Sequence record: MN871449.1
Length of the DNA stretch: 64,000 bases
Direction: 5' to 3' (one strand)
The notes beneath the pieces are model-generated. The model did not search any database. It worked only from the letters and a program-made list of their open reading frames with translations, and was not told the DNA's origin. The translations under genes were made by a program, and so were the position numbers. This document shows, piece by piece, positions 1,125 through 46,234 of this stretch. Position 1 is the first letter of the stretch, and each line of letters opens with the position of its first letter.

Positions 1125-1245
1125 GAAAGAATTCTAGAGGTCGCGGATTCGAATTCCGCTCTGCCTACCTGGACACATTCACAGAGTGTTTCTTGGAGGC
1201 AGATAGCTCAGCCGGTAGAGCACTAGATTATAAAATAAAACTTCC
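1125..1245 (+). ncRNA. Circularly permuted tRNA-like module 2 (1133-1227)
   Basis: TCTAG-AGGTC-GCGGA-TTCGAAT-TCCGC-TCTGCCT-A (1133-1167), ~29-nt hairpin linker, then AGGCAGA-TA-GCTC-AGCCGGTA-GAGC-A-CTAGA (1197-1227). Acceptor and anticodon stems are perfectly complementary in permuted order. Confidence 0.8.
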
Positions 1246-1393
1246 AATCTTATTCTTAGATAGGTCGCGCTAAATTCTGTTTATAGCTGAATGGCTATGG
1301 GCGGTGTTGGGGATGGTTATATCCTTACCTCCGCCCTTCTTACCACAAAAGTTTCTTTTTCAAAGAGATCACTTTTTGATAAATAAATTAATC

Positions 1394-4159: not shown

Positions 4160-4235
4160 GGGTCCATAGCTCAGTGGTTAGAGCAGGCGACTCATAATCG
4201 CTTGGTCGCAGGTTCAAAACCTGCTGGACCCACCA
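4160..4235 (+). tRNA. tRNA-Ile2 (CAU)
   Basis: Cloverleaf, anticodon arm GGCGA-CT-CAT-AA-TCGCT, encoded CCA. D and anticodon arms match recalled enterobacterial ileX. Confidence 0.9.
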
Positions 4236-4240
4236 TATTT

Positions 4241-4325
4241 GCCCGGGTGGTGAAATCGGCAGACACAAGGGATTTAAAATCCCTCGCTTAATCGCGTGCG
4301 GGTTCGAACCCCGCCCCGGGCACCA
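4241..4325 (+). tRNA. tRNA-Leu (UAA)
   Basis: AGGGA-TT-TAA-AA-TCCCT, long variable arm, CCA. Confidence 0.95.
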
Positions 4326-4330
4326 TCTAC

Positions 4331-4405
4331 GTCCTCTTAGCTCAGCAGGATAGCAGCAACGGCCTTCTAAGCCGTAGGTCACTGGTTCGAATCCAGTAGA
4401 GGACA
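4331..4405 (+). tRNA. tRNA-Arg (UCU)
   Basis: ACGGC-CT-TCT-AA-GCCGT; acceptor GTCCTCT/AGAGGAC; CCA not encoded. Confidence 0.9.
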
Positions 4406-4484
4406 CTTCATTATATTCACCCACAGTTTTTGTTGGTCTTCCTATTTCGGTTTAGACCACTAACTTGTATAAGGTAAAAGTAAA

Positions 4485-4826
4485 ATGAATGACGTAACAT
4501 TTGCACACAGTCAAGAAGACATTGATCATATTTCTTATCGTCTTCCTTTAGCCTCTGATCGAACGATTAACGATCCGGCTTATTTGATTAAGTCGAAAGA
4601 CGTTTTCGATATGATCAGGGGAACAGAAGAACTTAATAAGATTGAGAGTTCGAATAATACACGGATAATACATCACTCTCAGATTTACCAGGGCCACTGG
4701 AAAGACCAATTTTTATCGCTGATCAATGCGGCCGCTAAACGCAACGGTTGGAATACCGTCACCCAATATGGCGGACAAATTCTTTTGGTTGCTGATATCT
4801 GGTTATCTGTAGGGAAATTCCGGTAG
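4485..4826 (+). CDS. Hypothetical protein (113 aa)
   Basis: ORF with AAGGT RBS between the two tRNA clusters. Confidence 0.65.
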   Translation: MNDVTFAHSQEDIDHISYRLPLASDRTINDPAYLIKSKDVFDMIRGTEELNKIESSNNTRIIHHSQIYQGHWKDQFLSLINAAAKRNGWNTVTQYGGQILLVADIWLSVGKFR

Positions 4827-5023
4827 GCAATCAAAATTTAAGTAATTCAATATCTTATGAACAAAGATTGTAACTTTCTCTCCGGAATGTTAAGACAACA
4901 ATCAACCTGTTCAAATATTGCGCAAGTCTCAGAGGGAAACCATACGCCCTGAGAAGAAACTAATAGTGCTCCTTGGCCCGAGAGTAAAGAATGCAGCGCT
5001 GAAATAATCGGGTCCCAAATTCA

Positions 5024-5107
5024 GGGGAAGTTCCAGAGTGGTCAAATGGGTCAGACTGTAAATCTGCTGCTTCGGCTTCGGTAGTTCGAATCTACCCTTC
5101 CCCACCA
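5024..5107 (+). tRNA. tRNA-Tyr (GUA)
   Basis: TCAGA-CT-GTA-AA-TCTGC, long variable arm, CCA. Confidence 0.93.
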
Positions 5108-5114
5108 GTTTTAT

Positions 5115-5189
5115 AGAAGCGTAGCCAAGCGGTTAAGGCCCCGGGCTTTGATCTCGGTACCCCTAGTTCGAATCTAGGCGCTTCTGCCA
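5115..5189 (+). tRNA. tRNA-Gln (UUG)
   Basis: CCGGG-CT-TTG-AT-CTCGG; acceptor AGAAGCG/CGCTTCT; G73; CCA. Confidence 0.92.
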
Positions 5190-5194
5190 TTAGC

Positions 5195-5270
5195 GCAAGT
5201 ATAGCTCAGTCGGTAGAGCGATGTCCTTCCAAGTCATAGGTCGCGAGTTCGAACCTCGCTGCTTGCTCCA
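5195..5270 (+). tRNA. tRNA-Gly (UCC)
   Basis: ATGTC-CT-TCC-AA-GTCAT; U73; CCA. Confidence 0.92.
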
Positions 5271-5277
5271 GATACAA

Positions 5278-5379
5278 TGTTCTCGTAGCTCAACTAGGTA
5301 GAGCGCCTGCATCGGCGGCCACTGCGCCGCCAACTGCTTAGCAGGAGGTTGCCGGTTCAAATCCGGAAGGGAACAACCA
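5278..5379 (+). ncRNA. tRNA-like RNA with an extended anticodon arm (30-nt structured loop)
   Basis: Acceptor TGTTCTC/GGGAACA, A-CCA, D-arm GCTC/GAGC, T-loop TTCAAAT. CCTGC/GCAGG encloses ATC-GGCGGC-CACTGC-GCCGCC-AACTGCTTA. Confidence 0.8.
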
Positions 5380-5386
5380 AACAAAA

Positions 5387-5461
5387 GGTGCTATCGTCTA
5401 GCGGAAAGGATACCTCCCTGTCACGGAGGAGACCGGAGTTCAATTCTCCGTAGCACCGCCA
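5387..5461 (+). tRNA. tRNA-Asp (GUC)
   Basis: CCTCC-CT-GTC-AC-GGAGG; G73; CCA. Confidence 0.93.
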
Positions 5462-5467
5462 AATAAT

Positions 5468-5541
5468 GACTCTTTAGTTCAGTTGGTTAGAACGGCAGCC
5501 TGTTAAGCTGTAGGTCCCAGGTTCAAGTCCTGGAAGAGTCG
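5468..5541 (+). tRNA. tRNA-Asn (GUU)
   Basis: GCAGC-CT-GTT-AA-GCTGT; acceptor GACTCTT/AAGAGTC; G73; CCA not encoded. Confidence 0.9.
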
Positions 5542-5550
5542 CATTTTAAT

Positions 5551-5640
5551 AGAGAGTTGGATGAGCGGTTTAAGTCGCTCCCCTGCTAAGGGAGTGTATC
5601 CGAAAGGGTACCGAGAGTTCGAATCTCTCACTCTCTGCCA
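5551..5640 (+). tRNA. tRNA-Ser (GCU)
   Basis: CTCCC-CT-GCT-AA-GGGAG, long variable arm, G73, CCA. Confidence 0.95.
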
Positions 5641-5893
5641 AATAATGACATCTTACTTAGACTAAAGGCAGGGGTTAACCAGGCGACTTAATGTTGCGGA
5701 GAGTTAATCTTGGCCTAAGGCAAAAGTTGACCTCGGCGTGCTGAGGGGGATGTCTCCTTGTTATCCCTACGTAAATCATCGACGAATAAATGAGCCGTTA
5801 AATACGACCCATTTAAGCATAATTGCATCTCGGCTAAACACCGGGCGCTGCTGGTGTAGATGATACTCATTGAGTGCTAGGGAACCTATTCAA
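5641..5893 (+). ncRNA. Unclassified structured RNA within the tRNA array
   Basis: Nested helices 5765-5769/5878-5882, 5775-5780/5859-5864, 5793-5797/5831-5835, 5798-5803/5811-5816, 5838-5844/5851-5857; hairpin 5731-5746. No ORF of 60 aa or more. Confidence 0.55.
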
Positions 5894-6001
5894 TGATAGG
5901 CTAGCTTAAAGGTAAAGCGCGGGCATTAGGCCCCCTCTCATACGAGGGGCGCCTTAACATGGGAGCCTGAGATAGCCGTTCGATTCGGTACCTATCAACC
6001 A
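5894..6001 (+). ncRNA. tRNA-like RNA with an extended anticodon arm (40-nt structured loop)
   Basis: Acceptor TGATAGG/CCTATCA, A-CCA, D-arm GCTT/AAGC, T-loop TTCGATT. CGGGC/GCCTG encloses ATT-AGGC-CCCCTC-TCATAC-GAGGGG-C-GCCT-TAACATGGGA. Confidence 0.8.
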
Positions 6002-6005
6002 AAGT

Positions 6006-6703
6006 TGGACTTAAAAGAGAGAGTGCGAGTTAATGGGTCGCACAACGCCACTAGGCGAGACACCGGAGTCAGTGGTGGCGCTAGTAGAAGAAGTCAGTTA
6101 CCGGTATGCGGCCGCAACAAATTAACTGATACCCATTCTACACTTTTAAAGTCCACGTAACCTTTACAATACTGCTCTAGTCAAGTGATATTGTTTACAG
6201 AGAGTGCAGGTTCGACTCCTGCTCGGTAGTAGAGGCTCGGTAGGAAGGGAGTTCGGAATCGTATCCGAATGATTTGTCCAATAAGCAATAACTTATTGGT
6301 AACTCTCGTGAGACAAAGACTTCGGCGACCCGCCGGTTAAACGCGCCGCGGAATCGGCCGAGGGGTACTAATTATGACGCCTGTCAATTTCGGCGGCCTA
6401 CGCCTTAGAGCGAAAATAGGCGGCCATAGACCATAGACCTCAGCCGGGGATTCCGGCGAAAGAGGTGCAAGGAGCCGGCAAAAATGTCCGGGGGCGTCAC
6501 CCTATTCGATCCATTTCTCCAACGTAGAAGGGATCGGGTATTAAAAATCTGGAAATTAAGCTAACTCGTATAGCCGAGAATAAACATGTTTCGGTGGCGA
6601 CCTTAACATGAAAAGGATGATGTGCGATAAGTCATTTATGAGCTAAACACTGAGATCCTTTTGACTATTAGTCAGTACGAGAGAGGGTCGAAAGACCCTC
6701 TCT
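6006..6703 (+). ncRNA. Large unclassified structured RNA region (one or several RNAs)
   Basis: Closed domain 6006-6155, isolated T-arm 6206-6222, many helices from 6252 to 6662, terminal hairpin 6680-6703. No ORF of 60 aa or more in ~700 nt. Confidence 0.6.
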
Positions 6704-6708
6704 TTATG
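6680..6708 (+). terminator. Hairpin ending the RNA array
   Basis: AGAGAGGGTC-GAAA-GACCCTCTCT followed by TTATG. Confidence 0.7.
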
Positions 6709-45979: not shown

Positions 45980-46060
45980 TGAGATTAGAAACCATTTGGT
46001 TACACTGGTGAGGGTTTCCTCACCAGTGGACTTTTTATTTCTTAATGAGGAATCACGAGA

Positions 46061-46234
46061 ATGAGCGATAATAAGGTATCTTACCATATCGACGCTGGCG
46101 GTGAGGTTGAACTCTCTCCACGTGCCTACCAGGAAACCGTGTTACAGTATCGCTTCGGTTATACCGAAGCTCAACTGGCCAATATGTCTGACAATCAAAT
46201 CGCACAACGGTATGCAGAACTAACTGAAGGATAA
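46061..46234 (+). CDS. Small hypothetical protein (57 aa; not in the ORF track)
   Basis: GAGGAA RBS; MSDNKVSYHIDAGGEVELSP...ELTEG*. Confidence 0.7.
   Translation: MSDNKVSYHIDAGGEVELSPRAYQETVLQYRFGYTEAQLANMSDNQIAQRYAELTEG

Follow-up and report, generated by a model that had tools for sequence, protein, structure and literature searches.

A conserved tRNA-like RNA gene with a remodelled anticodon arm in the tRNA cluster of Klebsiella jumbo phages

Phage tRNA clusters are usually read as a codon supply or as anti-defence spare parts. In engineered tRNA scaffolds, the tRNA body confers RNase P processing and nuclease resistance, and Ponchon and Dardel reportedly obtained stable expression in E. 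coli of recombinant RNA put in place of the anticodon loop. YrlA (RF02553) has a tRNA-like body whose 'anticodon' side runs into a long helix, and RNase P, the CCA-adding enzyme, TruB, and DusA act on it (PMC4201824); YrlA-type Y RNAs occur in phages and show a link to operons for RNA repair (Chen et al. 2014, PMC4201824). Here, we describe X2, a gene in the jumbo phage deposited as Serratia phage KpXa_1 (host: Klebsiella pneumoniae), based on bases 1–64,000 of record MN871449.1 (hereafter, the window). X2 is a real, conserved tRNA-like RNA gene, in which the body of a tRNA is retained and the anticodon arm is remodelled.

X2 (5894–6001, + strand) sits in a stretch of about 1 kb without convincing open reading frames (ORFs) that follows nine canonical tRNA genes (4160–5640, + strand: CAU, Leu-UAA, Arg-UCU, Tyr, Gln-UUG, Gly-UCC, Asp, Asn, and Ser-GCU) and ends with a hairpin and a U-rich tail near 6675–6705. 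Its spacing (spacers of 6–7 nucleotides, nt) and its encoded CCA agree with those of the neighbouring tRNA genes. A sister gene, X1, is located within the cluster between tRNA-Gly and tRNA-Asp. Both genes are annotated as tRNA-OTHER in a GenBank relative (PQ182779.1), and a literature search found no paper on such phage RNAs, although annotation pipelines have registered X1 and X2. KpXa_1 is related to Klebsiella phage vB_KpM_FBKp24 (Maaswegvirus; hereafter, FBKp24), and the paper on the latter reports genes for tubulin-spindle as well as nucleus-shell proteins among the four phages described there.

The Rfam tRNA family (RF00005) matched X2 with 34.4 bits (gathering threshold 29; E-value 3.9e-6), a score obtained in a local search of 126 nt; the filters of larger Rfam searches missed X2. 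In this alignment, 36 nt of the arm are treated as an insertion. ARAGORN reported no gene at X2 in its default mode, whereas its intron mode returned exactly 5894–6001 as 'tRNA-Pro(tgg)' with a 33-nt intron at 34/35, and 5278–5379 (i.e., X1) as 'tRNA-Ser(gct)' with a 23-nt intron. The core nucleotides of a tRNA are legible (U8, A14, G18G19, G26, A15/U48, and the T loop UUCGAUU), including the 15:48 pair, and the RNA carries a 3' CCA and a short variable loop. Instead of a 7-nt anticodon loop with U33 and a purine at position 37, a 40-nt module is inserted between the strands of the 5-bp stem (Table 1). The minimum-free-energy fold is a cloverleaf (−39.1 kcal/mol), which is also the RNAalifold consensus, although its energy is unremarkable (z = −1.86; 14 of 200 shuffles equally stable) and, taken alone, is weak evidence; stronger evidence lies in the Rfam match, the ARAGORN call, and the spacing, encoded CCA, and conservation of the gene.

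The body also departs from canonical tRNAs in several details. The linker between acceptor and D stem comprises 3 nt (CUA) compared to 2 nt in tRNAs. In the Rfam register, the first U occupies position −1 and the 7:66 pair is a C·A mismatch. The proximal stem pair G28·U75 is replaced by G-C in most relatives. No transfer-messenger RNA (tmRNA) was called by ARAGORN, and the arm is a closed 25-nt hairpin, which places X2 outside that class. When bodies were compared, with a view to the isotype, to 435 distinct tRNAs called in the collected loci, X1 was nearest to several types (Ala, Arg, Thr, and Pro) and X2 was near none. Within the arm, we considered a pseudoknot between loop positions 45–49 and 65–69, for which pairing is possible. 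However, the 4-nt linker is too short to bridge a helix of 9–10 bp, and on this geometric reasoning a direct pair between positions 45 and 49 of the apical loop is preferred.

Much of this layout had been recognized in a first-pass annotation made from the sequence alone: the UG start and the ACCA end, the 5-bp proximal stem, the short 5' loop strand beginning with AU, the GC-rich distal helix, and the 6-nt apical loop are all found at the positions in Table 1. The AAC-containing 3' strand that it reported is also present, with 11 nt (10 nt if A35-U61 pairs) rather than the 9–10 nt it gave. The string CTCATAC does occur in the apical region, but its interpretation as a displaced Met/Ile2 anticodon loop is not supported by the relatives, most of which read CCAUGC there, turning the U33-equivalent into C, and by the pair-like co-change of positions 45 and 49 (U/A or C/G).

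Table 1 Coordinates of X2, its structural elements, and the sister gene X1 (positions refer to the window).
Feature	Position	Strand	Details and basis
X2, whole tRNA-like gene, 108 nt including the encoded 3' ACCA	5894–6001	+	Rfam tRNA; ARAGORN intron mode (-i); model R1, 139.5 bits; PQ182779.1 tRNA-OTHER
Acceptor stem, 5' strand UGAUAGG	5894–5900	+	7 bp with 5991–5997; invariant in 7 haplotypes
D arm, 4-bp stem, 7-nt loop AAAGGUA with G18 G19	5904–5918	+	Fold; Rfam alignment
Proximal ('anticodon') stem, 5' strand CGGGC	5920–5924	+	5 bp with 5965–5969
Internal loop, 5' strand AUUA, 4 nt	5925–5928	+	Sequence; fold; invariant among haplotypes
Distal GC-rich hairpin, 9 bp (8 G-C) with bulged C57	5929–5953	+	5929–5937 with 5944–5953; fold
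Apical loop UCAUAC, 6 nt	5938–5943	+	Within the distal hairpin
Internal loop, 3' strand UUAACAUGGGA, 11 nt (10 if A35-U61 pairs)	5954–5964	+	Invariant among haplotypes
Proximal stem, 3' strand GCCUG	5965–5969	+	Fold; haplotypes
T arm, 4 standard pairs and an A·A mismatch, T loop UUCGAUU	5974–5990	+	Fold; Rfam; ARAGORN
Acceptor 3' strand CCUAUCA, then discriminator A and CCA	5991–6001	+	Sequence; ARAGORN
X1, sister gene of the same design, 102 nt	5278–5379	+	Rfam tRNA, 38.9 bits; R1, 39.1 bits; ARAGORN intron mode (-i); 11 of 16 loci
X1 parts: proximal stem CCUGC/GCAGG, 5' strand AUC, 6-bp GC hairpin, loop CACUGC, 3' strand AACUGCUUA, ACCA end			

To describe the conservation of X2, a set of 16 loci was assembled from blastn records, from loci reached in public assemblies through homologues of ORF113, and from a pattern scan. 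ORF113 is a small protein gene inside the tRNA cluster (window 4485–4826, + strand). The blastn search found X2 in 13 phage records, all of them Klebsiella jumbo phages of one group. The X2 model matched all 16 loci, with the hairpin and internal-loop layout kept in the homologues, whereas X1 is found in 11 of them. The 16 copies represent 7 haplotypes with 8 variable sites, and the 40-nt arm is conserved as strongly as the tRNA body. Compared to FBKp24, X2 shows 3 differences in 108 positions, even though identity in ORF113 of the same cluster is only 75% and most of the 250-nt sequence upstream of X2 is unalignable between KpXa_1 and FBKp24. The helices are constant across haplotypes save for one G·U/G-C alternation and one singleton mismatch, and because they hardly vary, covariation statistics are without power and do not provide proof of the arm. 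Loop positions 45 and 49 change together (U/A in two haplotypes, C/G in five) on backgrounds that differ at sites 75 and 81, so that the co-change could reflect either a base pair or linkage. At one locus (L191), the T-loop partners 54 and 58 of X2 are swapped from U:A to A:U, and the same swap arose independently in X1 of phage Centimanus.

The surrounding cluster is far less stable. Genes for HNH homing endonucleases replace varying parts of it among the 16 loci, in several of them the majority of the canonical tRNAs, and in two of these (L183 and L186) only the CAU, Leu, and Arg tRNAs are left together with X2. The genes for tRNA-Leu(UAA) and tRNA-Arg(UCU) are present wherever a locus extends far enough upstream, and with X2 they are the sole genes that are always kept. 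Kept by all relatives examined, X2 is evidently under selection as judged from these comparisons and very likely works; the first-pass annotation had seen a functional family in the two divergent copies, and conservation across relatives likewise points to function. Cluster gene content differs in nearly every relative, with HNH ORFs replacing or splitting tRNA genes in L175, L177, L183, L186, L190, L191, and L003; for example, tRNA-Gly of L175 is reduced to its 5' part with an HNH ORF directly after it, and L177 gained a tRNA-Cys. When the upstream NMT1-like protein was used as bait, about 50 viral contigs (5–115 kb) of other phages or prophages were recovered, which were uninformative for X2.

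A covariance model built from X2 alone (R1) finds X1 end to end, distal hairpin included (39.1 bits; E-value 8e-9), which bears out the earlier suggestion that the two genes share one architecture. The alignment also pairs up the AU... and ...AAC... strands of the two arms, whose sequences differ while the design is the same, and X1 is the only other match of this model in the 64-kb window. In both genes, the initial U can pair with the base at the Rfam discriminator position, after which ACCA follows, and both are mismatched at the Rfam 7:66 pair. Compared to X1 of the window, Centimanus X1 has G-C in place of G8·A and A-U in place of G49·A65, the non-standard layers at the acceptor/T junction. 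A scan with the shared-body pattern recovered this phage group only in IMG/VR, one further contig in JGI metagenomes, and zero matches in 185,579 species genomes; blastn searches of phages, E. coli genomes, and plasmids returned no X2 homologues outside the group. On these searches the X1/X2 family is narrow, comprising Klebsiella Maaswegvirus-like jumbo phages only, and X1 is its second, more dispensable member.

Other origins or targets of the arm were also considered. No blastn match was found for the X2 arm as a copy of a host repeat (e.g., a CRISPR-repeat mimic). An exact-stem scan of the same 185,579 genomes, which tests near-exact copies only, gave 101 single-copy matches and no arrays; the matches listed are mostly from GC-rich taxa, and the sole one labelled Enterobacteriaceae is an unrelated GC-rich sequence. 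An antisense target of the X2 3' strand in the window was rejected, given 5 matches with at most 2 mismatches compared to 4.8 expected.

We consider it slightly better than even (probability of roughly 0.55) that X2 is a functional, non-decoding tRNA-like small RNA, i.e., a natural tRNA scaffold that displays a hairpin. X2 would be transcribed together with the phage tRNAs and other small RNAs in an operon spanning 4160–6705. Enzymes of tRNA processing recognize the acceptor/T stack and the CCA, and host enzymes of this kind would therefore be expected to release X2, with RNase P acting at the 5' end and 3' trimming proceeding to the encoded CCA. Since all core tertiary nucleotides are kept, the RNA would fold into the L-shape of a tRNA, and it would accumulate as a stable species of about 108 nt. 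Given that an asymmetric internal loop carrying a rigid GC hairpin replaces the canonical 7-nt anticodon loop, X2 is presumably unable to read a codon. The tRNA body would then serve as a scaffold for processing and stability by which tRNA-binding proteins could also take hold, and the specific element would be the remodelled arm. Most speculatively, X2 may act in the conflict between phage and host over tRNAs, as a decoy or sponge for a host protein that recognizes the tRNA body (e.g., a tRNA-cleaving defence nuclease or sensor), or alternatively an RNA-handling protein of the phage or the host may have X2 as its RNA partner. Such a conflict is also suggested by the cluster set (Tyr/Asp/Asn, with GUN anticodons) and by the presence of RtcB in some relatives; GUN anticodons are the targets of colicin-E5-type nucleases. 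The observed changes in X2 keep the structure (G·U to G-C, and the swaps at 45/49 and 54:58). The existence of a sister gene of the same design but another arm sequence, and of analogues in other phages that plainly cannot decode, also speaks for the scaffold reading. Several observations weigh against the scaffold reading: UGGGA abuts the stem exactly as in the anticodon loop of tRNA-Pro(UGG), and the two cluster genes that are invariant alongside X2 do decode, both of which fit a decoding X2; with invariant helices, the arm structure is drawn from thermodynamics and conservation rather than covariation; loop and internal-loop sequences differ between lineages, which weakens models that need one fixed apical-loop sequence; and X2 could be retained by linkage to the equally conserved RNA block downstream.

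Alternatively, X2 may be a pre-tRNA-Pro(UGG) from which an endonuclease and a ligase such as RtcB remove a 33-nt insert (at 33/34 or 34/35) to give a decoding tRNA, although we regard this as rather unlikely. The deletion of 33 nt considered in the first-pass annotation does yield a Pro-like loop with G37 (AUUGGGA), which matches the T4 tRNA-Pro loop UUUGGGA at 6 of 7 positions, with U33 and G37, the last five bases of UUAACAUGGGA (UGGGA) being positions 34–38 of the T4 tRNA; intron-mode ARAGORN makes exactly this call, and all loop substitutions observed in X2 lie within the putative intron. However, chance alone is expected to give U33 together with a purine at 37 in about 1/8 of splice choices, of which several exist, and X2 offers a second such loop at 37/38 (AUUAGGA, Leu(UAG)). 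The two loops that splicing would give in X1 (CUGCUUA and AUCCUUA) each have a pyrimidine at 37, so that X1 cannot give a canonical loop, and the anticodon GCU that it would carry is, in bacteria, that of a long-arm tRNA. Pro(UGG) is common among phage tRNAs (e.g., T4) and the other invariant cluster genes decode A-ending codons, but the acceptor end of X2 does not have the C1-G72 pair of T4 tRNA-Pro and X2 has an extra linker nucleotide; Pro codon usage in the window (CCA 17%, CCU 27%) is neutral. As for the enzymes, RtcB is encoded by FBKp24 (Pfam 4.1e-120), yet tblastn within this genus finds it only in FBKp24, KpSz_1, KpZh_1, and KpZh_LPS_45 and not in KpXa_1 or six further phages with unchanged X2, and we rejected phage RtcB as the splicing ligase because it does not co-occur with X2. 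The FBKp24 gene table holds no candidate for a splicing endonuclease, such an enzyme is not known from the host or the phage, and an intron-less X2 allele is absent from every collection searched. An exhaustive scan of X1 and X2 found no bulge-helix-bulge with flanking helices of at least 2 bp, which rules against an archaeal-type intron, and an insert of 33 nt, far below the size of a group I intron (P3–P9 core, usually >200 nt) and with no Rfam intron or ribozyme match, argues against a group I intron or small ribozyme. That X2 is a genuine split tRNA-Pro(UGG), whose insert, adjacent to the wobble base and lacking both a bulge-helix-bulge and a group I core, is excised and whose halves are rejoined in the infected enterobacterium by a protein-dependent pathway new to bacteria and phages, with two permuted modules at 935–1254 maturing likewise, strikes us as very unlikely, even though the putative splice sites coincide with anticodon nuclease cut sites (33/34 for PrrC and 34/35 for colicin E5).

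The main ordinary alternative to the scaffold reading is that X2 serves mainly as punctuation, i.e., a tRNA-shaped processing signal or protective 5' cap through which RNase P and 3' nucleases would release or stabilize the conserved small RNAs at 6150–6705, the arm itself being without a function in trans. Both T4 and mitochondria offer established cases of tRNA-shaped punctuation, the region consists of successive modules with recurring spacers after CCA ends, and the same conserved RNA block lies directly downstream of X2 in every relative. We nevertheless think such a role unlikely, given that a conserved 40-nt arm is superfluous for punctuation, that in KpXa_1-type phages a 148-nt element stands between X2 and the block while X2 is unchanged, and that X1, with the same design, sits between ordinary tRNAs where nothing needs release. 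Still less credible, and in our judgement highly improbable, is that X2 is a dead tRNA-Pro gene disrupted by a hairpin insertion and persisting by chance or linkage. The UGGGA remnant beside the 3' stem and the fast turnover of the tRNA cluster are compatible with decay, whereas X2 is kept in 16 of 16 loci though functional tRNAs were lost, is 97–100% identical where the flanks are 75% identical or unalignable, and changes in ways that preserve structure.

Other structured RNAs surround the cluster, and non-decoding RNAs of tRNA shape are frequent in this setting. The permuted tRNA-like modules noted in the first-pass annotation were found at about 935–1062 and 1127–1254 (+ strand), each a circular permutation with the order T arm, acceptor 3' strand, loop, acceptor 5' strand, and D arm. 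The acceptor 3' strand of the former contains ACCA, and the latter matches Rfam YrlA with 37.6 bits (E-value 1.4e-6), below the gathering threshold of 69. A strong terminator follows the modules (1394–1421). In the relatives L177, L185, L186, and L189, ARAGORN calls a 'tRNA-Stop(tta)' at the place of the permuted modules, and the tRNA-Sup-TTA that the FBKp24 paper lists some 3 kb upstream of the cluster (46,041–46,120) may be identical to that element. A spacer of 197 nt upstream of tRNA-Tyr (4827–5023, + strand) is 97% identical to FBKp24 compared to 75% for the adjacent ORF and may be a promoter region or another small RNA.

Beside tRNA-Ser, a structured RNA of about 130 nt (5757–5890, + strand) is common to Klebsiella, Erwinia, and Shewanella jumbo phages (other copies: L004:2443–2573 and L005:2449–2573), with an almost invariant core of 25 nt. 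In 11 of its 39 predicted pairs (RNAalifold, 3 sequences), both sides are changed with the pair kept; it matches no Rfam family. The 148-nt element of KpXa_1-type phages (6002–6149, + strand) directly follows X2, and has terminal inverted repeats (GGACUUAAAAG / CUUUUAAAGUCC); FBKp24, Centimanus, and the metagenome relative L177 do not have it. A module at 6150–6290 (+ strand) carries two T-arm-like hairpins, one of which reads GCAGG-UUCGACU-CCUGC and the second of which has the T loop UUCAAUU in FBKp24, and it directly follows X2 in FBKp24, Centimanus, L175, and L177. Approximately 200 nt at 6376–6575 (+ strand) are ~98% identical to L177, whose ORF113 protein is only 72% identical; with a visible closing stem (GACGCC/GGCGUC), no ORF, and no Rfam match, this is probably the most conserved RNA of the region. 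A weak Pistol match at 6564–6608 (19.5 bits vs. a gathering threshold of 34.5) is at chance level.

Regarding proteins, we rejected ORF113 as a partner of X2, given that its homologues are from close relatives and a Shewanella phage, with no Pfam match and no informative remote homologues; searches of PHROG gave only weak partial matches to families of unknown function. Its homologue in Shewanella phage SXP01 (30% identity; E-value 3e-10) is also located in a tRNA cluster. The RtcB gene of FBKp24 (L174, 170.5–180.5 kb) lies in a run of genes whose products have no Pfam or PHROG match, and a 563-aa ORF starts 3 nt after it.

Additional tRNA-shaped RNAs with unusual arms occur in other phages. 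In the homologous cluster of Erwinia phage pEa_SNUABM_10, the 'anticodon arm' of a tRNA-like RNA is a 7-bp stem capped by UUCG, which plainly cannot decode. Mini tRNA-like RNAs with one long arm are found in pEa_SNUABM_10, and Shewanella phage SXP01 has one. One such module (acceptor, one long arm, T arm, and ACCA) lies in the conserved RNA block of L175 (L175:1903–1998) and at the same place in L177, and is homologous to one in SXP01 (L005:3119–3204); these modules seem to move between jumbo phages. We also scanned IMG/VR for D arms of class I (short-arm-type) tRNAs with at least 10 bases more than usual between them and the T loop. Most matches were tRNA genes, above all tRNA-Tyr(GUA), in which the insert follows position 37 or 38; these genes have a short-arm body, which is unlike that of bacterial tRNA-Tyr, and some of the contigs are from giant-virus bins. 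The remainder came from several contigs, unrelated and apparently of phages, whose long closed arms occupy odd positions. tRNA genes with a long closed helix in place of the anticodon loop were seen in unrelated viral contigs (L078, L108, L153, L165, L056-type contigs, L071, and L122), among which L078 and L108 (contigs of about 137 kb) have a hairpin with an almost perfect 14-bp stem; ARAGORN reads these arms as introns at positions 30–35.

One of the three genes never lost from the cluster in the whole phage lineage has no canonical anticodon loop, and genes of this kind are either left out by annotation pipelines or entered as 'tRNA-OTHER', 'intron tRNA', or 'suppressor'. If X2 is a natural hairpin-displaying tRNA scaffold, phages have a class of regulatory or decoy RNAs defined by it, and it would help to approach a question that has stood for fifty years, namely the purpose of the additional stable RNAs in phage tRNA clusters (e.g., T4 RNA C and D). 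If X2 is spliced instead, it would imply a new RNA-processing pathway in bacteria.

Compared to RNAs with extra sequence inside the anticodon loop, i.e., intron-containing tRNA genes (archaeal and eukaryal bulge-helix-bulge introns or bacterial group I introns), X2 has no bulge-helix-bulge, its insert is not at 37/38 and is too short for group I, and RtcB was not found in KpXa_1. With regard to bacterial tRNA-Sec (8/5 stack), X1 resembles it in having eight layers in the acceptor and five in the T stem (13 in total), and both extra layers are Watson-Crick pairs in phage Centimanus, whereas X2 has 12 layers and one extra linker base. Unlike tRNA-Sec, neither gene has a UCA anticodon, a long variable arm, or a 6-bp D stem. 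The VIPR guide RNAs are arrays of GGYNN repeats and were set aside as unrelated to X2.

The resemblance to YrlA is closer: both are non-coding RNAs with acceptor, D, and T arms, tertiary nucleotides, and an extended 'anticodon' side. However, YrlA is a circular permutation in which the long helix contains the RNA ends and the acceptor stem is closed by a loop, whereas in X2 the acceptor ends are open, with CCA, and it is the arm that is closed. X2 has no Rfam YrlA match, the Ro60-binding motif GNCGAAN0-1G is absent from X1 and X2, and the words 'TROVE' and 'Ro60' are absent from the FBKp24 gene table. T4 stable RNAs C and D (species 1 and 2; rnaC and rnaD) are likewise small RNAs that end a phage tRNA cluster and whose function is unexplained, and rnaC has a T arm and paired ends. 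Neither shows sequence similarity to X2, and both lack a full cloverleaf, in contrast to X2 with its D arm, T arm, and core tertiary nucleotides all retained. X2 is therefore best filed near YrlA and the T4 stable RNAs in kind, as a member of neither. In design, X2 is the same as the engineered tRNA scaffolds, with an intact body, the anticodon stem kept, and a hairpin in place of the loop; those scaffolds are man-made, and X1 and X2 would be natural examples.

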